Shown: positions 10,775 through 62,749, numbered from the stretch's first letter. The stretch is DNA of 64,000 nt from Mizuhopecten yessoensis (GCF_002113885.1 NW_018480077.1:1794145-1858144); one strand, 5' to 3'. Numbers and translations are program-made. Notes: a model not told the origin generated them from the letters alone.

Positions 10775-11150
10775 ACAGGAAAAAGACAAATGAACCGTCA
10801 GATCGGGATTAAAAGCTTTGACCCTTCAAACTCTTGATAGACACTCTACCTATTGAGGTACCTGGTCGCTTACGATCAACCCAGTCCAGGTCTGCTACCT
10901 TCCTCCCTCCTTTTTCTAAGTCTTCCCACCTGACAACACAATTATTTACAACTCCAATTATGATATCTCCTTGCTAAGAATTCACCCAGTGCTTGGACCC
11001 AGGGTTGGCAAGCTAGCCAATTTTGTAACAGGAGAAAGTGAAATGGAACGTCCAGACCGGGATTCGAACACGGGACCCTCCGAACTCTAGTCGGACGCTC
11101 TACCAATTGAGCTACCTTGCTGACGATCGACCCATTCCAGTTCCACTACA
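10771..11150 (-). mobile_element. Complete miniature LTR retrotransposon (TRIM) with tRNA-like LTRs (Helenus-like)
   Basis: Two ~128-bp LTRs (11150-11024, 10899-10771) with TGTAG...TTACA ends; A box tagctcaattggtagagc and B box gttcgaatccc inside the LTR; TGG-initiated PBS-like sequence after the 5' LTR; PPT agaaaaaggagggaggaa abutting the 3' LTR; TATA on both flanks. Confidence 0.75.
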
Positions 11151-11676: not shown

Positions 11677-14600
11677 ATGGAGGTGTGCACTCCGCTAAAC
11701 GATGCCGTGAAACAAAGTGCTACAGGTATAAAAATAAACCCAGATAGCCAACAGTTTTCCCCAAATCAGATGGCCAGTTCAAGGAGTTCCCAAACAATTA
11801 AGCAATTGACACCACAATCAGACAGCCGTAAAAGATCTGACAATGGAGACAAAATCTCAGTTACCTTCTCTTCATCAGCATCAGTCATGAATCCTGGAGC
11901 AACTCGTCCTAAGTTGCTTGCAGAGTTGACATCTGTGAGAGCTAAACAGTTGGCTGCCCATTCACTTCCCGGTGGGGCAAGTCGGACACTCACCGTGGGA
12001 CAGGAAAAAGCCGGCAGATCAGAGAGTCCAATCATCATCATTGAAAACATCTCTAAAGTTTTTCCAGTGCCGTTGAATTCTCATGGACAAAAAACTGTGC
12101 ATAATCTCATACCCAGTGAATCTCAGTTGACATTGAGTAAGAAAGCCACCTCTCAGAGTAGCACTCCAGTGAAAAGGACAACCATTCAGGTCACTTCATC
12201 TACTAGTCCTGATCATAATATCAAACACCAAGACGCAGCTCTCACAGACAGCAATCGAACGGCAAAAGAAACATTTAAATGTGAAGAATGTGAATATACC
12301 AGTTACAACAAGCATTATTTAAAGCAGCATGTAGACCTTGTCCATCACGCTGACCGACCATTCAAATGTCCCTTCTGTGACTATGCAGGGAAGCGTAGTC
12401 ATTCTTTGCGGGAACATCTAATAGTTCACTCTAACGAAAGACCCTATGAGTGTACACACTGTAACGCCACGTTTAGAAAGAAAGGCCATCTCACAAACCA
12501 CACAAAACTCCACCAGAAGACAGTCTTCTGTAACACCTGTCGCAAATCTATCATTCACGCCGAGTTGGAGGCACATGTGAAAACATGTCGTGCTAGGGAA
12601 AACGTTTTTGTGTGTGAACTTTGTAGTTTTGTAGCTCCAGATGAAAACGCCATCTTGGAACATATCAAAGTGCATCAATCACAACAGATCTATGTGTGCA
12701 GCACGTGTAAACACATGACTAGTGACTTTGAAGCATTTGTTGCACATGCAGAAACACATCAACAGACATCTTCAAATACAGACTCGAGCACTGCAGAACT
12801 CAAATCTGCTTCTATTAAGGCAGACCTAAAACAGACTATTCTATCCAAGCGTCCACATGACCTAGAGCAGGGAAAGGAGTCACCTGTGTCTAAAGTTCGA
12901 CCTGTACCTGCGGCAACTAGTCAGCCTGGTAAACAGGACCTACTACTGAAATGTTCTGAGTGTGGGTTTGTTGCTCCTACTACCACACTAATGAAAAACC
13001 ACATGTGGACCCATTTACAGAGTATGGAAAACCCTTCCCCATCCTTCAAAGAGGAAGTCACTTCACAGAAACCTGCAATAGAGAGGTTGCCCCCACAGGA
13101 AAAGTCAGTGTACAAGTGTGTGGAATGTGACTTCATGTGTGGTGAAGCATACAATTTTGTAGTGCACATGTTGGCACACAAACCTGAACTTCAGCATTCA
13201 AATGTCCCGTCGATACCTGTTCCGTCACTACCTGTACAGTCTGCATCATTGCAGTCCATGCCAGTCCAGTCCGTACCATTGCAATCGGTACCAATGCAGG
13301 CAGGTCCAGTCCAGCCAGTTCCTGGTCAGTCTGTAACAATGCAGGCAGTTCCAGTCCAGCCAGTTCCTGGTCAGTCTGTAACGTTGCAGGCAGTTCCAGT
13401 CAAGCCAGTTTCTGGTCAGTCTGTAACGATGCAGGCAGTTCCAGTCCAGCCAGTTCCTGGTCAGTCTGTAAAAATGCAGGCAGTACCAATGAAGGCAGTA
13501 CCAGTGCAGTCAGGACTAGTGCCCTCGGTACAAATACAGCAGTTAAAACCTGTTAATACTTCCACGATTGAAAAATTAGTAACTTCTGTCCCCATGACAT
13601 TAGTTTCCTTTTCAAGTCCTTCATCAGCGAAGTCCTCGTCTGCTACAACACCCTCAGCTTCAGTGCCAGCTACGGTCACATCAACAGGCAAGGAGCCGGC
13701 ATCCCCTTTTGCCATCAGACAAGATTTGAAGGAAAGCATCCTAGCCAAACAGCAAAAACTACCTGCAATTCAAGACTATTTGATTAAAAGTAAAGATGGA
13801 GAGTTACCTCCCTTCGTCCATGACAGGGTGAATGCCCGATACCTGTGCACTATTTGTGGATACTCCTGTGAGTTTCAGAGAACTATAAAAGCTCACATTT
13901 GGAAACATTCAGGAAATCAAGACATTGAATACCCCATGTTTCAAAATGGCCCCCTCAGTATTTATGATTCTGCTGTAGAATCTAAATCTTGTTTGAATTT
14001 AACACCAAGTTCTGTATTTATGATGGAAAAGGCACAGAAAGCATTAAAGGAAAACACTAAGGAACCCAACACAAAGGTTTCTACCTCCCAGCACACCTCT
14101 GTCAGTCCCATTGCTCCTGCCTTGGCCCACCTTTTGGCTGCGAGGGCCATGACTGGACTCACACAGGAAGTGACCTTACCAAAGGTTACAGAGTCTGAGG
14201 TTAAATCCCAGTCAGATGTCCAAGATTCCAAGGAGGAAACTGAAATAAATTCAGATTTTATCTCAAAACCAACGGTGAAACCAGCCTCGAAGATTTCTCA
14301 AGGGGAGGATGCAGAGACCATACCTTCAGAGACTGACGCAGAATCCAGTCCGACAAAAACATCAGATGTACTTGGTACAGCGAAAGAAAACGAACAAGAT
14401 GATGATCATCTAACCACTTCTAACACGGCACCTGCTGAAACCGTCAGTGTTGGAAATGATGATGAAGAGCCGATGGATACTACAAGTATGACACAAGAGA
14501 CATCGGAGGATTCGGTGGATAAGTCAGATGCAGAGAAACAAGATGATACATCTCCAAAAACCTCTGGATCAGCCCAGGGACAAAATGGTGCTAAAAAACG

Positions 14601-16701
14601 AAAACTGAGTGAATCAAAGTATGACGTGAATGAAATGTTACAGATGGTGAAGCTGTTCTGTGCTGCAGAGGATGTAGAATGTGAGGATGTGGTGGAGCAG
14701 GGCAATGTTGTCGTGGAGACGGTGGATTGTGTGGTAAACTTGTCAGGGCTGACCAGTATAAAGAGTCAACAAAGCAGTCCCCGTACATGCTCTGGAATAA
14801 CAGGGTCTACAGAGGGCGAAATCACTGGTGAAACAGAGCAAGACATGGAGTGTGGTGACTCCGGGTTCATGTCGGATACAAATTCCAGTCAATCACAAGC
14901 CACCTCAAAAGTGGAGCATGCCTACATGTCAACAAGATCAAGTTCCAGACAATTGGAAAGATTGAAGAAAAATGTCAGTAATTCTCCTAAATCGAAACAC
15001 AAGGAGGGCATTGAGCATGCGACAAAAGAAGCAAGTGGGTCAGGGAAACATCAAGAAAAAGTTAGGAAGGATGAGGCACAGAACAGAAACTGTGCAGAAA
15101 ATGAAGATTTAGAGGAACATGATGAAGAGGAAGAGGACATTCCTCCATCTTCTATGGCAGAATCAGCTGTAACTTTGCTGTCTTTGCTGAAAAAAGGAGC
15201 AAACCATAATCCAGCATGTCCATCATCAGCACAGAAAGTGAAGGACGAACAGTCTGAGGTCACCAGGACGAAAGGAGACATTACGAAGGAGAAGAAACCT
15301 AAATCTCAGGGCATTTCTTCATCTTTACTTGCTGTTATAGAACAGTTGAGAGAACGGGCACGGACGGAAACAGACTATGATATAGAGTCTGGAAAGAAAG
15401 GTACAAAAAAGAAATCACGGAGGCTCTCTGCAGAGGATGAAGGGCCAATGGAGAAGATGGACAATGTGGAGCGTATCGAGGAGGCAGAGGAAGACGAGTC
15501 GAGGTTTCGTTGTAAACTCTGTCACTACTCTAACTCCAGTACTTTTGTAATGAAACAGCATATGCGTCTACACAAGACGAAGCGTCCATTTGAGTGTTCA
15601 CTGTGTGACTTCATGGCGGAATCTAGTGAGGACTTGCAGAACCATATGATAAAACACTGTAAAGTTCGAACGTACCAATGTAAGTTGTGTCCATCTGCAT
15701 TTAACTACAAGAGTCAACTGCGTGCTCACATGAGAGCACACAATGAAAAAGACGTTTTTGCTTGTGAGGAATGTGACTTTGAAACAGGAAACCCCAATTT
15801 ACTGAGGAACCACATGAGCAATTGCCATGAAGTCAAGCAATATGTGTGTGAAGTATGTGAGCGGAGATTCGTCTCCAAGCACCAGCTCAGAGTCCATAAG
15901 AAAATCATGTGTAACGGAGAAGAAGAAATGCCGTTGATGTTGTGTCCAGATGAAAATGGGAAAGAAACACAGGATCAGAAATCTCACGGAAAGTTCCAAA
16001 AACAGGACTTCAGGTGTGCAAAGTGTGATTATGTAACTAACTCATTTGCAAGATTTGGAAATCATATGAAGACACATGAGGAACCAAAGGTTCTGAAATG
16101 TGAGCTATGTGACTTTCCAGCTGTGTCCAATCGTAGCCTTAAGTCACACATGAAGCGACACATAAACGACCAGCGGTTTGTGCAGCAGCCACTGGAACAG
16201 TACAAGTGTAATCTTTGTGGCTATGTGTGTCACCACCTTCCTTCGCTAAAATCACACATGTGGCGCCATGCTAGTGACCAGAACTACAGCTACGAATTCA
16301 CAAATGAAGTCATCAATGCAGCCATTGATTATGACAGCCGTCTTGACACCAAAGAATGCTGCGAGGAAGATGTTGCAGAGTTCAATAAAACAATTCGTGA
16401 AAAGATGCGGATCCGACTCGCTAGTCAGGGTGTCACCAAAGATGCGGAGAGTCTGTGTGCTGTTTGTTGGGTTACCTTCCGCTGTTGTCAGTGTGGGTTT
16501 GAAGTCATCAATAAAGCGCAGCTAAACTTACACATGAAGACACACTCAGATGTTATTCAGTGGACTCTGCAGGTCTCCCAAAACAGTACTACCAGCAGTG
16601 GTACAAGTGGGGGGCAAAGTAGTGCTATCACAGTGGACAGTGGGGAAGGCAGCAGCCATGTTAAACAAAGACCTGATAGGAAAGGTCTAGAGATACAATA
16701 A
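11677..16701 (+). CDS. ZNF507: C2H2 zinc-finger protein, ZNF507-like (1674 aa, ~18 fingers, single coding exon)
   Basis: Long ORF with C2H2 fingers. Blocks recognised as ZNF507-like: KAHIWKHSG..YP, GISSSLLAVIEQLRER, HCKVRTYQCKLC..FNYKSQLR, CGYVCHHLPSLKSHMWRHASDQNY.YE. Splice acceptor 102 nt upstream of the ATG. Confidence 0.85.
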   Translation: MEVCTPLNDAVKQSATGIKINPDSQQFSPNQMASSRSSQTIKQLTPQSDSRKRSDNGDKISVTFSSSASVMNPGATRPKLLAELTSVRAKQLAAHSLPGGASRTLTVGQEKAGRSESPIIIIENISKVFPVPLNSHGQKTVHNLIPSESQLTLSKKATSQSSTPVKRTTIQVTSSTSPDHNIKHQDAALTDSNRTAKETFKCEECEYTSYNKHYLKQHVDLVHHADRPFKCPFCDYAGKRSHSLREHLIVHSNERPYECTHCNATFRKKGHLTNHTKLHQKTVFCNTCRKSIIHAELEAHVKTCRARENVFVCELCSFVAPDENAILEHIKVHQSQQIYVCSTCKHMTSDFEAFVAHAETHQQTSSNTDSSTAELKSASIKADLKQTILSKRPHDLEQGKESPVSKVRPVPAATSQPGKQDLLLKCSECGFVAPTTTLMKNHMWTHLQSMENPSPSFKEEVTSQKPAIERLPPQEKSVYKCVECDFMCGEAYNFVVHMLAHKPELQHSNVPSIPVPSLPVQSASLQSMPVQSVPLQSVPMQAGPVQPVPGQSVTMQAVPVQPVPGQSVTLQAVPVKPVSGQSVTMQAVPVQPVPGQSVKMQAVPMKAVPVQSGLVPSVQIQQLKPVNTSTIEKLVTSVPMTLVSFSSPSSAKSSSATTPSASVPATVTSTGKEPASPFAIRQDLKESILAKQQKLPAIQDYLIKSKDGELPPFVHDRVNARYLCTICGYSCEFQRTIKAHIWKHSGNQDIEYPMFQNGPLSIYDSAVESKSCLNLTPSSVFMMEKAQKALKENTKEPNTKVSTSQHTSVSPIAPALAHLLAARAMTGLTQEVTLPKVTESEVKSQSDVQDSKEETEINSDFISKPTVKPASKISQGEDAETIPSETDAESSPTKTSDVLGTAKENEQDDDHLTTSNTAPAETVSVGNDDEEPMDTTSMTQETSEDSVDKSDAEKQDDTSPKTSGSAQGQNGAKKRKLSESKYDVNEMLQMVKLFCAAEDVECEDVVEQGNVVVETVDCVVNLSGLTSIKSQQSSPRTCSGITGSTEGEITGETEQDMECGDSGFMSDTNSSQSQATSKVEHAYMSTRSSSRQLERLKKNVSNSPKSKHKEGIEHATKEASGSGKHQEKVRKDEAQNRNCAENEDLEEHDEEEEDIPPSSMAESAVTLLSLLKKGANHNPACPSSAQKVKDEQSEVTRTKGDITKEKKPKSQGISSSLLAVIEQLRERARTETDYDIESGKKGTKKKSRRLSAEDEGPMEKMDNVERIEEAEEDESRFRCKLCHYSNSSTFVMKQHMRLHKTKRPFECSLCDFMAESSEDLQNHMIKHCKVRTYQCKLCPSAFNYKSQLRAHMRAHNEKDVFACEECDFETGNPNLLRNHMSNCHEVKQYVCEVCERRFVSKHQLRVHKKIMCNGEEEMPLMLCPDENGKETQDQKSHGKFQKQDFRCAKCDYVTNSFARFGNHMKTHEEPKVLKCELCDFPAVSNRSLKSHMKRHINDQRFVQQPLEQYKCNLCGYVCHHLPSLKSHMWRHASDQNYSYEFTNEVINAAIDYDSRLDTKECCEEDVAEFNKTIREKMRIRLASQGVTKDAESLCAVCWVTFRCCQCGFEVINKAQLNLHMKTHSDVIQWTLQVSQNSTTSSGTSGGQSSAITVDSGEGSSHVKQRPDRKGLEIQ
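13255..13510 (+). repeat. Coding minisatellite (45-bp/15-aa unit QAVPVQPVPGQSVTM built from 5-aa subunits)
   Basis: About 4 near-perfect copies of cagccagttcctggtcagtctgtaac inside the ORF. Confidence 0.85.
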
Positions 16702-25223: not shown

Positions 25224-28200
25224 ATGTATTTGTCCTTGACTGTTGTCTGCTTGGTGCTGGGAAGAGTGGTAGCCAATATCACTGGACAGCACCCCGTGTC
25301 CGGGACGTGTCTGTGCCTCAGCACCTCCAATGTCAACGCACATACAGGCCGTAAGTACTTGACATAATATCAACATTGCTTACTGCAGATTCTTCCCATT
25401 ATTTAACTGTTTGAAATTCATAAAGTATTTTTGTTATATTTCGGTACCAAAATAAACATAAACTTACCATCAATATCACGCCGAAAGGAAATTCAAAATA
25501 TAAGAACCAGACATTATATACAGACTTGAACGTTGGCTAGTCTCATAATAAGTAGCCCGAGTTTCCTCTGGCCCTTACACCAGACTTACATATTTTGACC
25601 ACTATCTGTCAAAATGTTTAAATCTGGTGTCAGGGCCAGAGGAAACTCGGGCTACATAATAAGTAGCTATCGTAAACATGTAATCTTACAACTTTCACCT
25701 GTCTATACAGTTCATACAGTTAACAGAAAATCACTTATGTTCGCGTTTGTACATCCCGAGACGTCAGCAATCCATGCATTCCCTTTATTAGAATGTACAA
25801 AGAAACCACATGGTCACGGTTCGTAAAAAACGCACATTCCCAAATGTCACCATACTAGTGCAAAACATAACTCTTGAAAAAGTACAATAAGGCACACACA
25901 TGGGCATAAGCAACAACTCCTACCTTCATATCACACAAATCTTTCCCAATGCGATGACGATGGCAATCACAGAATTTGTCACCATTTTCTGTCACAGAAA
26001 AATAGCATTCATAAAATTTACAGTAGGTAAAATCACAGCAAACTATGTTTATCCGTGTACATAAACCCAAATATAAACACTTTCACATAGCCATGCTGTT
26101 GCAACAAACCAATGATTAGTCTAATTAGCATATCTAGGTGTTTTTTTTAAAGATGGGTTTCTGCCAGAGTGTTTTGATTTTTTTTTTGCAAGTATCAAAG
26201 AAACTTTCCATAAGTACCAGCAATGAGAAAAAACAATCTATAGACTAGTGTACTTCATTAACACGAAATAGTTTGGGTTCATAATACATACTGTAGCTTA
26301 ATTTGGTCTAACCACTATCACAGTTCATACTATTTATGTGGCTCATTCGATTAATAGAAAAAGTTAAAAGGCGTGTTTGCAGATGTCAATACTGAATGTG
26401 TATACGTAACAAAAGGTAACAACCGAGAACCCTTGGATTTTAAAATTAGGTCGGTCACCACATGTAGAAAATATATGTGTCTCTATTTAACTAATAGCCT
26501 CTGGGGATGGGATATTGAAGTTCATCAAAACACCATTGGATTGGTTCATATTCCTGTCGTATTCTATGTAAACGTTGATAATGCTTCGAAACACATGCCG
26601 ATAATGCTTTAAAACTGTGAATGCCATCTGGAGGAATTCTCGTTTATTTGGCCAGGTGATCAATTATATATCGATTTAGGTGATATCAACATCACATACC
26701 CATTTAAGATCTGAAATAGTAACAAATAGAATTTTTGAACTATTAGTCATCTTAACGTTCTTATATATATATATCCTTTTCTAAGCTTGTTGTAATCTGC
26801 TTTTTCTGAGGTTCTCGTGACCTTACCTTACTTAATGTATATCTTTATTCCTCAGTTAACGACATCTTTGTTTCCTTTCTTCAGCTGTATATGTTGACTA
26901 GCTGTCCTTGGTGTACATTCCTCAATCTCGCCTGGCCATCATCTCCTCACCTCATCTAACTCTCCCGTTATGTTTTCCTTTCAGCTGGCCTCCATGAGCC
27001 GGTGCATGCGTCCTTGTCTATAAACCACTGCTACAAATTCCACGGTGGTATCCTCACCAAAGATGGCTACGAGTGGTACCAGCTTCAGAACGTTAATGGA
27101 GAGGTAACATAAAATGTCTATTTAAAAATGAAGTCTGATTTTGAAAGAATATTGGAACATGGCCATGTAAAATTATTAAAATGAGTATTCTTGATAACAA
27201 TCAAGAACTTTTTATATTATATTTTGTGTTTGATCCTTAACTATTGATTTAATTACAGTGGTTTGAAAAATAATTATAATAATTAAGCTTCTTGGCCTAT
27301 TACACCAAGACTAAAATATCGAGAAACATGATCTGTTGAATGGTAATGTTAAGTAATGCTATCATCCTTACAGATGATTTAATCACAATGTTTAGAATTA
27401 AGCAAAACAAGAAGAGTTTAGGTGGAAACTCTTTCTGAACAGGCTAAATCGGTGACTTGAGGGGTGAAAGCAAGTCTGTTTTGATGACTCCTTCACCAGA
27501 GCATATTAAAGCAACCAGGGATAGAGTTGTACTAGGAATCAAAGACTTACATCACGATCGTTGTGAATACTTCATGTGTATATGTATACGTAATGAGCCT
27601 CGTTTGTTAGACAATGTTGGTCATCCTACATATTTTTTTCTACATAGATATGTTCTTGAATCGTTTGAAGTGAAAATTAAGTCTCTGATATCATTTTGAT
27701 CCCAAAATTGATCAACATACTTAAAGCTCTTTGCAACCTGTTTTTTTTTTTTACTAACTTTACATTATAAGCAACACATCATCGTCTTTGTTAACTTCAT
27801 AACTGACATTCCCTACGTTATACGATGACTATTTTTAATTTTCGGTCATAGGATTTATATCAGAAATCTGTTTAAGTGCATATTCTCTTTTCAGAACCTT
27901 TGGGTAGTAGGGCGATACTTAAACATTGGATCTGATGTATCCCTATGTACTGGTAAGTACATTTTCTGTTCTGATCTGGCAGACTTTGATGAATGTTTGA
28001 TAAAAAGTTAAATTGACTTAAAAATCTATCACTGCTGGTTATCTATTTTTTTCACATTTTATTTTATTGCCCCACAACATTTGTTTTGAATACTGCCAGG
28101 GTTTGGGCCCTGAATTCAATATACTTACAAATATGTCCTCCTGCAAGAGGGCTATCTATTTATTGCTATTTCCCCCATAACAAATATACCAAATCAGTCT

Positions 28201-30372
28201 TAAAAAATGAAAATTAATTGCTTATATTTAGGAATTTCATATTTATTGAATATATAAACATTTATTGCTCATTCGACCACCTCCGTTTTATCAATTTGTC
28301 AGTTTTTGATATGCCACTAAATGTATATTTTCTTTAAAAGAATGAGTTTCAGTTTGGGAGTATTTGTATGAGGTTGAAATTCTTAATTAATACCAAACTT
28401 TTATCTTGATAGGTACAAGTGGTTTTTTTTTTTTTTTGCAATTGAAAACCCACACGTTGAAATGAACACTGCTCTGAGTAGCCACAAAAATACTGGATAT
28501 TTTTGAACGGAATATACCACTTTCGTAGAATATTGTAAATATGTTTAAAATCATATTGACACAATGTGGATTACAACTGAGTGAGATTGAGAGAATGAAG
28601 GTTCAGCGACAATCTCTGAAATTTTCACTCGGACTAAACCTATTTCTTAATCAACGTCAACAAATTTTACGTTTTATAACTGTACATTACAACACTTTTA
28701 TTCCAGCTGGAACTTCTTCATGTTCAGATACAACTGCTAAGAACCAAGCATGTGAAATTCTACAGCTACATAACTCTGGTCGAATCGTTCTCTGGGATCG
28801 CCATCCTTCGGGTAACCACGACAATGCCTATGCTTACAACAATATCCGGGATACTTGTAGGGGACTAGGAGCTTCTAGGTCAAGGTGTGTAACAGGATTT
28901 CTTATTTAATGCGATCTCACTTGCATGTTTCCATAATTATGCAAATGATGTATTAATATCTGTAAAATAAGGCAAAATTAAAATGTATGATTCCCCTGAT
29001 ATAATGTAATAATAATTACTGGTACTAAGTAAAAGGTATATATATTACGTTCAAATTATCTTTCAGCAAGGGCTGCCAGACAAAATATACAATCTATATG
29101 CAGTTGTATTGCGAGCCGTCAAATAAACTTCATATTTGTATATAACATTTCAGTTTACAATAACCTTTAAGCTGGACTTTGTGTTATTGAGTGTCGTAAA
29201 CTTTGTTGATCAGAAGCGCTTGTTTGATTCGTGTGTGACGTCATAATTTATGCATGTCTGTTAGTTCCGAGTGTCAAATTATTTGTTGATTACACACGTC
29301 TCGTAGATTCAAGCATTTCACTACCTGTGTTTTTTGTGTCATTTATAATCGATGTATGTAGGTTGAATACGCCTGTTACTTTCAGCTATTACTGCGACCT
29401 ATGTGGTAATAACACGCCTGGGGGTCACGTGTGTCTCAGTAGGACCCTGTTACAATTCATATACGATTTGGCCAAAGCAGGCAGCATGCATGTAAGTGAA
29501 AGCGCTGACCATTGAAAGTATTGACCAGTAAAACAACAAGAACTAGAACATTTAAAAAATTTGTGCTCTTAATTAAAATTTAGGTTGTGTATTAAAAAGT
29601 CAATAATGTTTTTCAAATGACTTTATTTTAAAATAGTGTTCAATTACTCAAATATAATTTAATTGGTTGGTTGATAATTTAGTGTTGCCTGTGCCAACAC
29701 TAAATTACCATTCTCGTTTAGTGCAATAGTAGAGAGTGAGACAATGGTAAAAAGTAGCGTTCGTATCAGTTTTGGGTCATCATATTAACAATGTAAGAGT
29801 TTTGTTTTGAAATTAAAAACTTTTATTAAAACCATTCTATTTCCACACTTACAAAAATAATTAAATTCCGCATGTGCATAATTAAATATCAGTGTGTCTA
29901 CATGTGATAGATCTTCATTTCAGCATTTTATCTTAAAATTGATCATTGCAATATTTACAAACACCTATGTTTCAGACAATGAAATGAATGTCAAACAATT
30001 TTAAGTTTTTCCATGTATGTATGTTTGAACATTTATTTTTGGCATTTGGTTTTTCTCATTTTTTTTTTAAACTGTGTGATGATGTAGTTTGTACATTGAG
30101 GTAGTGATCATTACATCCTTACACAGATACTTAATATTTATCATGTTTATTGTGTTATTGTTTTGTTCAGGGATAATACATATAGTGTAAGTTTCGTTCT
30201 ATGCCAGGTGAATGAAATAGCGGGGGCGTGTCACCACTGTAACTCCTCTCATTACAAAGGCACAGCTGTCGACATCCAGACCAGTTCCAGGAACACAGAG
30301 ATCATGGCCAAGTGTAGATCAATGGGAGGATTCGCTCTCGATGAGACCAGCCACATCCACTGTAACTTCTAA
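25224..30372 (+). CDS. Secreted SH3b-like + LAS/M15-type Zn metallopeptidase (putative peptidoglycan hydrolase), 250 aa; exons 25224-25350, 26985-27103, 27895-27952, 28707-28884, 29386-29491, 30208-30372
   Basis: All five introns are GT-AG with compatible phases (1,0,1,2,0); 753 nt open; gccATG start; hydrophobic signal MYLSLTVVCLVLGRVVA; SH3b-like CLCLSTSNVNAHTGPG...DGYEWYQL..VNGENLWVVGRYL; catalytic SHYKGTAVD and HIH; AATAAA at about 30377. Confidence 0.85.
25553..25654. mobile_element. Palindromic MITE with 9-bp TSD (Mutator-like) in intron 1 of the peptidase gene
   Basis: tagcccgagtttcctctggccct...agggccagaggaaactcgggcta flanked by cataataag on both sides. Confidence 0.85.
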
Positions 30373-31812
30373 CAAAATAAAAAATATATTTTCAAATTTG
30401 TTTTTTCGATCTCTGGAACTGTACAGAAAGTGATACTATATATACAACTGGGAAACTTTCGCTGCAGTTTAACAGCAATTTCATTTCTGTTAATATTTTA
30501 ACAGCATTTATAAACATAGTAGTTAAATGTGTTGTGCGAAATAAACACTGGGCGAAAATTGCTTTCAGAGGCAAAGGGCGGAAGTTTGACTGGGGGAAAA
30601 ATTCCCGGCATACAGTATTGAATATTTAGATTATGTTTCCTGAACCAGTCCTGAAGTAGAATATTAACTAGATGTTAACTGGACACTTGTGACATCATCG
30701 CTGTTTTAAGTATAGGTGAAGATGATTTGGGAGGCAAGCTTAGTGTTTAGAGAGTGTCTTATCATTTTGTGTGCTAGGGCTGTTCACAAACATTTTTCTC
30801 TGCTGTTGCAAAAATGAAAACGGAGGTAAGAAATGAATGGAGATTTCTTTGTGATATTAAAAACCACCAACAATTGTATCACTATTGTAATTCAAACAAT
30901 GTCTCTTTCATTATCAGTCATTTTTATCGATAAAAATATTATGTTGTTTATAGAATTATTTATTACTACACTGATCAGAAAATGTACATTGATGCTGATA
31001 TGATCCGCATTGTAAACTGATTGGTCAACATCAGCGTAGTGGAATGTGATTGATCAACATACGATTAATCGAATGTTACAACAGACTAGCGATGCGCATA
31101 TGGTCGCTGGTCGATGTCTTTGTATTCTTATACAATGGAAATGCCTCTACAGCACTGGTGTAGCTGTCAAGCCTGATAAGCATGATCATGTGTTAAATAT
31201 CACAGGATAAGTAAATGCTCCTGTTCTGAAAACAGGTATTGTGTAGAGCTAGAGTGGATATATTGATAACATATGTTAATAGAAAGTATTTTATATTGAT
31301 ATTTATCATCAAAATGACCTATGACCTTTGCTTACCTTTATGATTATTTCGATCTCTAATTACTTTGCTGTGGTATAAAAATGCAAAATAAAGGTAAGTT
31401 ATATTGATAGACATTGATACTCCGTCTTACCTATATTGGAGACCTTTAGAGGACTATTACATGAGCAAATGAAAGGTTTGTCAGATAGATCCATAAGTTT
31501 GACATGACCTTTTATATAATTTTTCATATGCTATTCCGTTTTCAATTTTGCAGTGATATGGTAATATACAAACACTTAGTTAAACTCTTTAAATTAGTAC
31601 AATATAAATTATAGATAAAACTGGGGTCTGTTTGATCTATATTCTATATCTATTCTTCAAATTATCACACATACATTAAAAATACAAAAGCTGCATCCTG
31701 ATGCCAGATATGTCCAAGGTAAAGTATATCAAGTGTTTCGCATACTGTGGTTCAACCTCACAGAGATGAAGTATTTAAATTAATGGAATTTCAATCTCAA
31801 TGACTTAAGTCT

Positions 31813-59400: not shown

Positions 59401-62400
59401 GTTATTTATAGTCATAGTACAAACAAAAATGTAGTTTCTAATGGGAATTCAGGTGAATTGTGTGTTCTTTAAATTGTTTTTCAATAGACAAAAACTAAAT
59501 TTCACAGCATGATTTCCAATCAAATATTTTTTTATTTTTTTTTTATCATTAACCGTCCAGAAACATACCTTCTGCAGAAACATCATCTGCTTGAAAAATT
59601 GTCCCATTGCCTACTTCTGTGGTTAGTGCATGGCAATCTGCTTCCTCGTCTGTCACAGAAACGATGTCCATGTCCGATACGTGCCTAGGCAATGTTTGCC
59701 GATCTGATTTTTCGCCAGTTACAGACTCAATGTCTCTGTTATATTCTTGTGCACAAAGTTCACTGCGACCTGTCTCCTCGTCTGTTACAGATTCGATGTA
59801 CCCGTTACATGCTTGTGTACCATGAGCATGGCAATCTGTCTTCTCTTCTCTTTCAAGGCCGATGTTTCCGTTATATACTTGTGTACAAAGTGCATGGCAA
59901 TCTGTCTTCTCGTCTGTTTCAGACTCGATGTTTCCATTACATACTTGTGCACAAAGTTCACTGCGACCTGTCTCCTCGTCTGTTACAGACTCGATGTACC
60001 CGTTACATGCTTGTGTACCATGAGCATGGCAATCTGTCTTATCGTCTGTTTCAGACTCGATGTTTCCATTACATACTTGTGCACAAAGTGCACTGCGATC
60101 TGTCTCCTCGTCTGTTTCAGACTCGATGTTTCCGTTACATACTTTTGTATCTAGTGTGCGACAATATGTCTCCTCTTCTGCTACAGACTTGATGTTTCCG
60201 TCACATACTTGTGCACAAAGCGCACTGTGATCTGCCTCCTCGTCTGTTTCAGACTCAATGTTTCTGTCCCAACCTTTTGTACCATGTGCGCGGGAATCTG
60301 TCTCCTCGTCCGTTACAGAATCGATTTTGACATCACCTACATAAGTTTTCAATGTACGACAATCTGGCTCGTCCTCTGATACTGAATCAATGTCCATGTC
60401 GCATTCCCCGGTGGACGGTACCTGGCAAGCTGGCTTCTCGTCTGTTACAGAAACGATATCCACATCACAGTCTTGGGTCGACATTGCATAAACATCTGGC
60501 TCTTGGTCCTCGTCATTGACGATATCTCCTTTATGGACATCAGACTCATCACAAGTTAAAGACTGAGTGTCACTGTCACATTCTAGTGTGGACGTAGCAT
60601 GGCTGTCTGGCTCTTTGTCAGACAGTACGCTGTCCTCGCAAATACCTCTCCATTCTCGAGCCATACTCAATGACAGACTGTTATTGTACTTCACTTCATC
60701 CACTGACTTGCCTCCAGAGGTTGGTAACACGAATTTGAAGGGTGTGTCCAACTTCAGTGTTATTTCTTGATTGGTGTATCTCTGGTCGTCATCCGATTCA
60801 TCTGTTACATATGCAACGATTCCGGATGTCATTTACAATACCGAATAAATATATAAACATATATGCATGTCATGTACCGCAAAACTGGAAATTTTCGTGA
60901 AGTGAATATGCTCCGGTCTTTCGCGCTGATTAAATTATCAGATTAGATTTAGATTAAAGTTAGAATAGCGCATAACGAATTTAAGAATCGTTTCCACACA
61001 AATATTTCCACAGCGCAAGGAATCACACCGCAAACATTTCCACTCGCGACAATTTCCTCTTTTATAGTGTTTTATAGTATTACTGAATGTGCTCAGTATA
61101 TATGTATGTTTATCTTGATTTTCCTTCCACACAATTTTCTCAATAAATCCTAGTGAATCTCCGTTGTAATGAACAGAAAATATTTAAAAGATATAAGAGA
61201 AGGTAGGAGAAAGTGTGCCTCACGTTTTAGTCACATTAACAGATAAATCCTTTCGAAACCTCTTAATCTTATAAAATAATGAAGACCCTCTCCTATCCTA
61301 CTTCAACCAACCTTTCTGAGCACTCAGTTGCTACGATACCATACTCATTGCCACTGTAATACTATCTGAATATTTAGTTTTAAATATTACCGCGCGATTC
61401 TTTATATTTACTGCTCCAAACTGTTGCAACATGGGATTCTACGTGATGTTATATTTTAGTATTTCTCAAACCTTACCTCCCATTGGTTGAAACTCCTCAT
61501 TAGTTGCCCCGCTTTTTCTAGGCACGTCTTCAGCAACATCATACCCAACAACATTACCGGAGAGGCTGCGAGTTGGACGGACAATCAGTAACATACACCC
61601 ACCATCAGTTTGATCCCTGCACGAATTGGTGTCGGTGTCTTCAGAACTTGGCAGTCGCGATCTTTCCTCGTGTAGCCGTTCTTGAGGTTTTCTGATTGGC
61701 TCATCAATGTGTTGAAAGTTCCTTACTGCGTAATTCCCATACTTTCTTTGCTGATCCGTGTGTTCTCCTGTATATTCTGATCGGCAAGTGTCAGCTGAGG
61801 ATATCTGACTATGAAAGTCGTCGTGTTTTGGTTCACTTCCGAGCTGCCTGTGCTCCGTGTTCCTCAATAGCTGCTTACAAAATTTATCCTGATTGCTACT
61901 ATACACTGGCTTGGGTGTGCTAATGCAAATTGGTTTAGGTGTGCTACAATAAATTGGTTTTGGTACTTTGGTCTGGTTTCGTTGAGAATCCCTTGTCAAG
62001 CTGTTGTGACGACCGATCTCTAAATTCTTACTGTCGGAATGCCTCAGTGACGACTCCTGTCCTGCTTGCCTGCGCCGGACGGAAGCCTGATTTCTGACCG
62101 AAGAACGATTGGCACTGTTCTTTGTAATTTCACTTGTACGCCGTTCTTTTGTTTTGTGATATTCAGCAATGATTCTCTTTGCCTCGGCTTCAAACGTGTT
62201 TACTTGGTCCACACTGGTCATGGTTGTGTTGCCGTGTCTGGTAGCGGTTTTGGAAGCAGCATATTGGTCGACTGATTCCCTAGTTTCTGCCACAGCAATG
62301 TGCGAAGCAGCGTGGTGGTGAAATATTGGCCCAGTGTCTCTATGCTGGTGATGTTGAGGAAGAGAGTACTTCCTTATGACTTTTCTAACATCATTTTCCA

Positions 62401-62749
62401 ATTTGTCGACTCGATCAAAGATGTCTTTTGTGGAAATCGGATCTTTGCAGGGTCGGTGTTTTCTACGATCGTGCGATTCCAAACGTTGTGACTGAGTTCT
62501 GCTGTATTCTCTAGCTGTAGAGTTCGTGAAACTGTTCCAATGGGCCGGTTTCGTTTTAACGGCATCAATGGTGTCACTCCAGCTTTGTTTGGTCTGCAGA
62601 AGCTTAAGTCTCATATTCATCAAGCGAAGTCTATTAACTTCCTCAAGGATATCAGCATGACCGTTGAAATCTTCCTTTACATTGAGTTGCGAGGCAAGAC
62701 CATAGTTTTCTTGTCTTAGTTGGTTGATCTCGTGAATTATATCTCCCAT
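41497..62749 (-). CDS. Giant low-complexity protein (~3,520 aa or more) with N-terminal coiled coil and exon-encoded W-acidic repeats; at least 33 exons
   Basis: Exons: 62767-61477, 60801-59569, 59294-59064, 58864-58661, 58209-58108, 57916-57635, 57387-57262, 56932-56705, 56319-56107, 55685-55434, 55094-54858, 54690-54454, 54286-54050, 53882-53646, 53478-53242, 53081-52797, 52524-52279, 51687-51439, 51331-51035, 50211-49963, 49771-49475, 49174-48932, 48602-48321, 48060-47368, 47247-47143, 46593-45976, 45814-45611, 45152-44742, 44133-43993, 43667-43527, 42960-42814, 42677-42522, 41966-41497. All GT-AG, all phase 1, open frames; AATAAA at about 41044-41060 on minus. The first exon has an acceptor and an open frame upstream of the ATG, so the true start may lie further 5'. 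Confidence 0.8.
41520..41915 (-). repeat. 54-bp/18-aa coding repeat x7 in the last exon (RKEIPRRGTRCSTTDAYH-like)
   Basis: RKDIP../RKEIP../RKETP../RREIP../RRETP../RTETP../RKEMP.. at mostly 18-aa spacing. Confidence 0.85.
46771..46980 (-). mobile_element. tRNA-derived SINE (same family as 38192/38640), intronic
   Basis: Minus-strand head gtggtcagatggcgcagtggatag...ggattcgatttcc; body ccatccgggccaacaag; tail aataaagtt. Confidence 0.7.
53155..55175 (-). repeat. Five tandem 404-bp exon+intron units
   Basis: Exon starts at 55094, 54690, 54286, 53882 and 53478 (exact 404-bp period); introns nearly identical. Confidence 0.97.
56440..56545 (-). mobile_element. 3' fragment of the same SINE family, intronic
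   Basis: Reverse complement of ttcttcccacactaagacccccacgcgcttacatccgggcctacaagagtgact. Confidence 0.65.
59610..60630 (-). repeat. 66-bp/22-aa coding repeat, ~15 copies (IESETDEETDRSALCAQVCNGN)
   Basis: actcgatg at 60055 and 60121 (period 66); the repeat is clear in the 427-aa ORF. Confidence 0.9.

Follow-up and report, generated by a model that had tools for sequence, protein, structure and literature searches.

A spliced gene of the scallop Mizuhopecten yessoensis for a predicted secreted, SH3b-targeted zinc peptidase of an animal family with bacterial relatives

Gene structure, expression and conservation in scallops

We examined a 64,000-nucleotide stretch of the Mizuhopecten yessoensis genome (GCF_002113885.1 NW_018480077.1:1794145-1858144; the whole of this stretch is called the window here) and focused on a gene at 25224-30372 on the plus strand. 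A preliminary description of this DNA had proposed an intron-containing animal gene for a secreted, endolysin-like enzyme, with a signal peptide, an SH3b-like domain and a zinc peptidase domain of the LAS/M15 type. We observed that six exons could be read from the sequence, and that their joined translation gave a protein of 250 amino acids (aa), matching the one described earlier. All five introns were of the GT..AG kind, with phases 1, 0, 1, 2 and 0, and the codons split at exon joints (three in number) encoded P, A and S.

All of the exons were on the plus strand. Exon 1 (25224..25350) contained the start codon, a signal-peptide-like N-terminus and the first SH3b strand, and ended in phase 1. 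The SH3b core was in exon 2 (26985..27103), which showed 90% identity with the ortholog of the scallop Ylistrum and had joints backed by RNA. Exon 3 (27895..27952) supplied the final SH3b strands and a linker; its phase-1 end is a junction conserved across phyla, immediately ahead of the putative catalytic domain. The N-terminal helices of that domain, including the conserved H-P-S-G..D-N-A-Y..N-N-I-R-D, were encoded by exon 4 (28707..28884), which ended in phase 2 within a Ser codon. Exon 5 (29386..29491) encoded the middle of the domain (P-G-G-x-V-C-L and a helix) and ended in phase 0 ahead of V-N-E-I, and exon 6 (30208..30372) encoded the catalytic core and included the stop codon. The codons of interest in exon 6 were those of H205 (30232-30234), H211 (30250-30252), D218 (30271-30273), E242 (30343-30345), H245 (30352-30354) and H247 (30358-30360). 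The H-x6-D and the C-terminal H-x-H of the preliminary description were thus both present, as H211..D218 and H245-I-H247. A candidate polyadenylation signal, AATAAA, was read from the sequence at 30376..30381 (+), right behind the stop codon, and the RNA depth stopped within ~60 nt past it.

Splice joints were seen in RNA at 25350>26985, 27103>27895, 27952>28707, 28884>29386 and 29491>30208. Exons 1-6 with all five joints were contained within single transcript contigs (629 and 657 nt) from two runs; a third study yielded partial transcript contigs, and a fourth yielded raw RNA-seq reads with the same joints. Spliced RNA of the gene was found in four studies in all. Three of the four transcript polymorphisms were synonymous, and one was Q>L. 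The gene was single-copy in the 988-Mb genome, and its GC content was that of its flanks. The gene is real, spliced and expressed, and the earlier claim of six exons joining in frame is borne out by the five joints in transcript contigs and raw reads.

RNA depth was seen on exons only, except at a repeat in intron 1. This is an inverted repeat at 25546-25661 (54-nt arms, 89% complementary, with an 8-nt loop), resembling a miniature inverted-repeat transposable element. RNA depth on it was 35-210, in comparison to 4-50 on the exons of the gene, and many loose ends were seen. Since the depth was far above that of the exons and the loose ends were many, we consider it to belong to a dispersed, transcribed repeat family.

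The ortholog in Ylistrum balloti (P0082) was also 250 aa long and was 86% identical to the window protein (212/247 whole codons). It had the same six exons, with identities of 71, 90, 68, 90, 89 and 94% for exons 1 to 6, and the same giant C2H2 zinc-finger gene as its upstream neighbour. Between the two scallops, the ratio of nonsynonymous to synonymous substitution rates (dN/dS) was 0.08, at a dS of about 1, and the gene is therefore under strong purifying selection. The zinc-finger gene was seen in the window at 11677-16701 (+) as an unbroken open reading frame (ORF) of 1674 aa, with many C2H2 zinc fingers and ZNF462-like matches. Its counterpart in Ylistrum balloti (1608 aa) was located upstream of the orthologous gene, and the neighbourhood is therefore syntenic.

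N-terminal and catalytic domains

Folds were predicted with AlphaFold2 on the ortholog P0082 (as a proxy for the 86% identical window protein), using an alignment of 47 sequences, with a predicted local distance difference test (pLDDT) score of 91.1. The N-terminus of the 250-aa protein was hydrophobic over residues ~1-17, ending with V-V-A ahead of N-I-T-G. Judging by this composition and by a helix that the ortholog model has at residues 2-12, it resembles a signal peptide, in agreement with the preliminary description. The mature window protein has 14 cysteines.

In the same model, residues 27-95 of P0082 superposed on the Bacillus SH3b structure 9ovi with a Z of 9.0 and a root-mean-square deviation (rmsd) of 1.6 A over 64 of 67 residues. 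Further matches, at Z 7-8.6, were to the domains by which lysostaphin, ALE-1 and several phage endolysins bind the cell wall. The Pfam model SH3_3 was above its cut-off in the Sinanodonta ortholog P0081 (28.5 bits vs 27) and touched P0028 (E 0.007), and exon 2 of the window gene searched alone (39 aa) had no match in Pfam or among PDB sequences. The predicted SH3b fold of the N-terminal domain, suggested earlier as SH3b-like, is confirmed by the model of the ortholog and by the Sinanodonta match.

Lysostaphin, ALE-1 and the endolysins of Gram-positive phages likewise join a catalytic domain to an SH3b domain. In these proteins, however, the order is reversed, since the SH3b of the window protein is N-terminal, and their catalytic domain is of the M23, CHAP or amidase type, whereas that of the window protein is M15A-like and encoded by an intron-bearing animal gene. 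Among molluscs, MgPGRP5, an SH3b-containing peptidoglycan recognition protein (PGRP) of the Pacific oyster, has been described as a recognition protein (PMC11810698). It is also a secreted mollusc immune protein with an SH3b beside a peptidoglycan-directed domain, but the partner there is an amidase-type PGRP domain (PF01510), and in the window protein it is a LAS peptidase domain.

The scallop genome also contained two paralogous three-exon modules of signal peptide and SH3b-like domain on contig C2904 (~962,100-963,900 and ~970,700-971,500; loci L009-L012, of which L012 contains a run of N). These were 53% and 42% identical to exon 2, and they continued into long Thr-rich repeats of ~17 residues and not into a LAS or peptidase domain. 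We considered these paralogs as parts of PGRP genes and rejected this, as no PF01510 match was found near the C2904 modules.

The C-terminal domain of the ortholog (~146 residues), when folded alone, gave a pLDDT of 97.1. Its best match among solved structures was ShhN (Z 7.6-7.7 over 102 aa, with 21% identity), and the next were fly HhN (Z 6.9), the Streptomyces albus structure 1lbu (6.7, over 98 aa) and VldE (5.8). Lower matches were MepA (5.3), VanX (5.2), Ply500 (4.7) and then VanXYg. All of these, from ShhN and HhN through VanXYg, belong to the LAS / MD-clan group. In the ESM Atlas, bacterial clusters superposed over 131-135 of the 146 residues, with an rmsd of 1.6-2.2 A and template modelling (TM) scores of 0.78-0.86. 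The cluster names were 'Peptidase M15 family' and 'putative Carboxypeptidase' (both at TM 0.84-0.86) and 'Peptidoglycan-binding domain 1 protein'. The TM was 0.76 for a cluster in which phage made up 58% of the members, and Hedgehog clusters reached only 0.52-0.56. The full-length structural similarity of the domain is far higher to the bacterial wall enzymes than to Hedgehog.

When the family was aligned, the columns of H205, S209, H211, Y212, G214, A216, D218, E242 and H247 (window numbering) were invariant or nearly so. The zinc-ligand columns were invariant in the 26-47 family members aligned, E242 was nearly invariant, and the first His of H-x-H was lost in a few members. H211, D218 and H247 correspond to the canonical LAS zinc ligands; H205 aligned with H135 of Shh, and E242, H245 and H247 were within an E-x-x-H-x-H motif. 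The catalytic apparatus looks intact, because the zinc ligands, H205 and the E-x-x-H-x-H motif are conserved. As judged from the ortholog model, the C-terminal domain would adopt a Hedgehog/DD-peptidase (LAS, clan MD) fold, in which helices flank a central antiparallel sheet as they do in ShhN, 1lbu and VanX, with an intact H-x6-D / E-x-x-H-x-H site, and the His/Asp/His zinc site of LAS type proposed earlier holds in that model.

With exon 6, Pfam returned HH_signal at 18.6 bits (cut-off 22.1; profile positions 110-160) and Peptidase_M15_3 (PF08291) at 16.4 bits (cut-off 23.2), and the scan of single exons gave nothing beyond these two sub-threshold matches. Among 43 family members, 15 touched Peptidase_M15_3 (best E 9e-4) and six touched HH_signal, all below threshold; the gathering threshold of Peptidase_M15_3 or of Peptidase_M15_4 (PF13539) was not reached. 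NCBIfam had nothing for the catalytic domain, and in bacterial members only the PG_binding parts were matched. The C-terminal domain of animal or bacterial members had no significant match in PHROGs, and matches in BFVD were weak (best E 8.7e-4). Membership of a phage lysis protein family was not found; phage relatives do exist, as seen in the Atlas cluster with 58% phage members. Among PDB sequences, the family profile matched Hedgehog N domains only (E 4e-6), and exon 6 matched ShhN. The M15/endolysin assignment of the preliminary description is thus approximate; the fold and the bacterial 'Peptidase M15' clusters agree with it, but no threshold of Pfam, NCBIfam or PHROGs is reached, and by sequence the only PDB matches are Hedgehog N domains. 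The automatic names carried by some family members ('lysozyme 3', 'Cyanovirin-N domain', 'Killer toxin Kp4 domain' and 'Peptidase M23 domain') were supported by neither Pfam nor sequence and were not used.

The window protein shares the S-x-H-Y-x-G-x-A-V-D and H-I-H-C motifs with ShhN. The match is, however, limited to the catalytic core, and the window protein is without the Hint domain, the lipidation motifs and the region of the Ca site. Its reading frame ended three residues after H-I-H, with no N-terminal Cys-Gly-Pro-Gly. The true hedgehog exon of the scallop was located on another contig (C5024, ~240,148-240,387; L002 1435-1674) and encodes that half of the Hedge domain which contains the zinc site. 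It was the only other genome match of exon 6 (47% identity over 45 residues), and hhalign related the family to it with 95.6% probability over 52 columns. The earlier statement that the window gene is not Hedgehog therefore stands, as the true hedgehog exon is elsewhere. Bacterial Hedgehog-like proteins 50% identical to ShhN have been described (Roelink 2018, PMC6027127). We also considered the window family as a source of the Hedge domain and rejected it, since these bacterial ShhN-like proteins (50%) are closer and the Atlas TM to Hedgehog is 0.52-0.56.

Among the wall enzymes, the structure 1lbu is that of the zinc D-Ala-D-Ala carboxypeptidase of Streptomyces albus G (MEROPS M15A). This enzyme has the same catalytic fold (Z 6.7) and the same H-x6-D and H-x-H zinc ligands as the window family, and its architecture of PG_binding_1 and catalytic domain is common to the bacterial members of the family. 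Its tail, L-G-P-G-x-x-G-H-x-x-H-x-H, is found in bacterial members and is kept in echinoderm members, whereas in mollusc members the tail is shortened, additional cysteines are numerous, and SH3b takes the place of PG_binding_1. Sequence similarity was marginal, with no match for the family profile. One bacterial member matched 1lbu through this tail at E 0.15, and this was its only PDB match.

An animal family with bacterial relatives

When exon 6 was compared by phmmer with 1.84 billion representatives, 43 matches were obtained, all at the C-terminal end of short secreted proteins. The architecture of signal peptide, SH3b-like domain and catalytic domain (247-262 aa) was seen in bivalves (Dreissena, Mytilus, Ostrea, Pinctada, Mya, Mactra, Ruditapes, Mercenaria, Sinanodonta and Ylistrum) and in gastropods (Lottia, Patella, Littorina, Biomphalaria and Gigantopelta). 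More than 15 mollusc genera had orthologs, and five echinoderms had paralogs. Homologs from Ciona, Branchiostoma, coral or Trichoplax were not among the matches listed in the word-indexed searches, which require shared words. The prokaryotic members were from Streptomyces, Chloroflexota (including a metagenome-assembled genome of Thermomicrobiales), Deinococcus and Myxococcota, and had 2-4 PG_binding_1 domains ahead of the catalytic domain. A related-locus search with a single bacterial protein (P0038) returned only its own Thermomicrobiales contig.

Four kinds of N-terminal module could be verified ahead of the catalytic domain, all ending in phase 1 at the conserved junction. These were SH3b (widespread in molluscs), one or two defensin-like six-cysteine repeats (in Patella, Lottia, Batillaria, Littorina, oysters and echinoderms), VWA domains (in an environmental sequence) and a signal peptide alone. 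The defensin-like six-cysteine repeat was also seen in mollusc PGRP and destabilase-type (lysozyme-type) proteins.

Trees were made from the catalytic domain alone and were unrooted. In a quick tree of 100 sequences, one branch set all animal sequences apart (SH-aLRT, i.e. the Shimodaira-Hasegawa-like approximate likelihood ratio test, 99). In a more careful tree of 49 sequences, the branch between animals and prokaryotes had an ultrafast bootstrap (UFBoot) of 93 and an SH-aLRT of 95, and was a single split in 94% of the bootstrap trees. On midpoint rooting (i.e. with a root that is not inferred), the animals fell within bacterial diversity. Two groups with cysteine-rich repeats, the echinoderm proteins and a clade from oysters, were near the base, and the SH3b forms were in a mollusc-only clade (99/96). 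One 262-aa SH3b-peptidase of gastropod type (P0106) was deposited as 'hypothetical protein, partial [Escherichia coli]' from a contig of 898 nt. In the tree it was placed next to sequences of Littorina, in the part made up of molluscs only, and it is almost certainly a mollusc cDNA contamination of a bacterial assembly.

Three introns agreed in position and phase among the two scallops, Lottia (SH3b type), Crassostrea angulata (cysteine-repeat type) and the starfish Patiria miniata. These are a phase-1 intron immediately ahead of the catalytic domain, a phase-2 intron within a Ser codon ahead of a conserved Tyr, and a phase-0 intron ahead of V-N-[EA]-I. Since these positions and phases are common to molluscs and a starfish, a gene with these introns was present before the protostome-deuterostome split, and the family is no younger than the early bilaterians. 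A bacterial origin of the catalytic domain by transfer is plausible, and it would be ancient, with vertical inheritance since. The horizontal acquisition proposed in the preliminary description is thus retained in part: bacterial relatives fused to peptidoglycan-binding domains were found, but the acquisition was not specific to one lineage, and any transfer took place before that split. Phylogeny, which was suggested there as a check, gave one animal clade (93/95), which fell within bacterial diversity on midpoint rooting; the family was widespread in molluscs and vertically inherited since the split.

Proteins of a similar kind have been reported. Rusticalin-like proteins of tunicates, amphioxus, corals and Trichoplax are secreted, 248-271 aa long, and consist of two defensin-like cysteine repeats and a peptidase domain of clan MD that is presumed to stem from phage or bacteria, with two peptidase-domain introns conserved in Ciona, amphioxus and Trichoplax, and with the phage L-Ala-D-Glu peptidase Ply500 as best template (Daugavet et al. 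2019, PMC6339383). They are like the window gene in predicted secretion, size, C-terminal MD-clan domain and, going by the published description, two conserved introns inside that domain, and their architecture was found in the mollusc and echinoderm paralogs with one or two defensin-like repeats. They differ in that the window gene has SH3b in place of the cysteine repeats, and in that Ply500 ranks low (Z 4.7) for the window family. Compared by published description and not by aligned sequences, the two are probably the same family. The preliminary description is to be corrected here, as closely similar animal proteins were published in 2019 (PMC6339383). In our literature search, no paper was found on the mollusc SH3b form. 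As far as the sequence goes, the window gene would be a new SH3b fusion of the published rusticalin-like kind, in a phylum where this had not been reported before, with a putative function.

Proposed function and alternative readings

From the sequence and the ortholog model, we infer zinc binding, catalysis, substrate, secretion and biological role as follows. The signal peptide would be removed and the protein secreted. Through its SH3b domain (~residues 27-95) the protein would attach to the peptidoglycan of bacteria, and the C-terminal domain would bind zinc through H211, D218 and H247 and cleave a peptide bond in the stem or the cross-link of peptidoglycan, with H205, E242 and H245 assisting. 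The role may be antibacterial defence or the digestion of filtered bacteria. The nearest relatives of the catalytic family would be bacterial and some phage proteins with PG_binding_1, akin to the S. albus M15A enzyme; the family would have entered or arisen in animals before the protostome-deuterostome split, and would then have gained varied N-terminal modules at the phase-1 intron.

We give a probability of about 65% to this reading, i.e. that the gene encodes a secreted, SH3b-targeted zinc peptidase of an animal family with bacterial relatives, acting as a peptidoglycan-cutting enzyme of defence or digestion. The architecture and the family placement are highly probable, and the enzymatic, antibacterial or digestive role is rather probable. 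Several points weigh against the reading. No curated family model (Pfam, NCBIfam or PHROGs) attains its cut-off, and the Z scores of 6.7-7.7 to solved structures are only middling. The folds are those of an 86% identical ortholog and not of the window protein itself, the direction of transfer is unproven with an unrooted tree, and the kinship with rusticalin-like proteins was compared by description only, not by sequences. For all animal members, activity, localisation and induction are putative. An intact LAS site can also have a signalling role that is not enzymatic, as in Hedgehog.

Three alternatives were considered. The protein might be a non-catalytic recognition or agglutinating protein, in which peptidoglycan is bound by the SH3b domain and the LAS cleft but left uncut, as in the non-amidase PGRPs, and the zinc is structural. 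SH3b is used in the mollusc recognition protein MgPGRP5 (PMC11810698), the same site is retained in Hedgehog, for which no substrate is established (PMC6027127), and a few family members have lost the first His of H-x-H. We nevertheless consider it unlikely, as there is little or no variation in the zinc ligands and in the candidate catalytic His and Glu across molluscs, echinoderms and bacteria, the dN/dS is 0.08, and the relatives in bacteria resemble wall hydrolases. Less probable still is a signalling ligand like Hedgehog, or a peptidase whose target is the matrix of the animal itself (e.g. mantle or shell matrix, proteoglycans) and not bacteria. Although Hedgehog N domains are the only solved relatives by sequence, ShhN is the best solved fold match, and hhalign gave 95.6% against the scallop's own hedgehog exon, the sequence match covers only ~50 residues, and the TM of 0.52-0.56 compares with 0.78-0.86 for the bacterial wall-enzyme clusters. 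The protein has neither Hint nor an N-terminal Cys-Gly-Pro-Gly, with its stop three residues past H-I-H, and its partner is SH3b or, in paralogs, a cysteine repeat common to PGRP and lysozyme-type proteins. The bacterial proteins that are 50% identical to ShhN form a separate group (PMC6027127).

The third alternative, a recent horizontal transfer into scallops, an assembly contamination or a functionless frame due to chance, could draw on the existence of bacterial homologs and on the absence of the domain from curated animal families. It is refuted by the five spliceosomal introns with spliced RNA in four studies, by the GC content that matches the flanks and the synteny with Ylistrum, by the occurrence in more than 15 mollusc genera and five echinoderms with introns shared with a starfish, and by the dN/dS of 0.08. 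Among these readings, the peptidoglycan-cutting enzyme remains the one that we prefer.

Animals attack peptidoglycan by lysozymes and PGRP amidases. To our knowledge, animal peptidases that cut its peptide stems come mainly from a few horizontally acquired genes. The present family occurs widely in molluscs and also in echinoderms, but has no name in Pfam, NCBIfam or PHROGs, and the SH3b-peptidase architecture mimics that of bacterial and phage lysins. We tentatively suggest, at slightly less than even odds, that molluscs, and more thinly echinoderms, have built undescribed secreted peptidoglycan peptidases by exon shuffling, from one three-exon M15A-like cassette with introns predating the protostome-deuterostome split and interchangeable modules at the phase-1 intron. 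If the enzymes are active, animals would have, in addition to lysozymes and PGRP amidases, a third class of enzymatic effectors against peptidoglycan, which would cleave the peptide portion of the wall. The family also extends the Hedgehog/DD-peptidase superfamily by a branch from animals, and bears on whether the zinc site of Hedgehog is a working peptidase site. For the aquaculture of scallops, oysters, clams and mussels, it offers a candidate effector against bacterial pathogens.

Further features were observed elsewhere in the window. Two adjacent intronless ORFs, each of exactly 427 aa, were present on the minus strand at 59549-60832 and 61466-62749; they had no Pfam match and were mutually unrelated (28 identical positions). 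A tRNA-like element (Rfam tRNA, 38.3 bits) was located at 11054-11117 on the minus strand, just upstream of the zinc-finger ORF.

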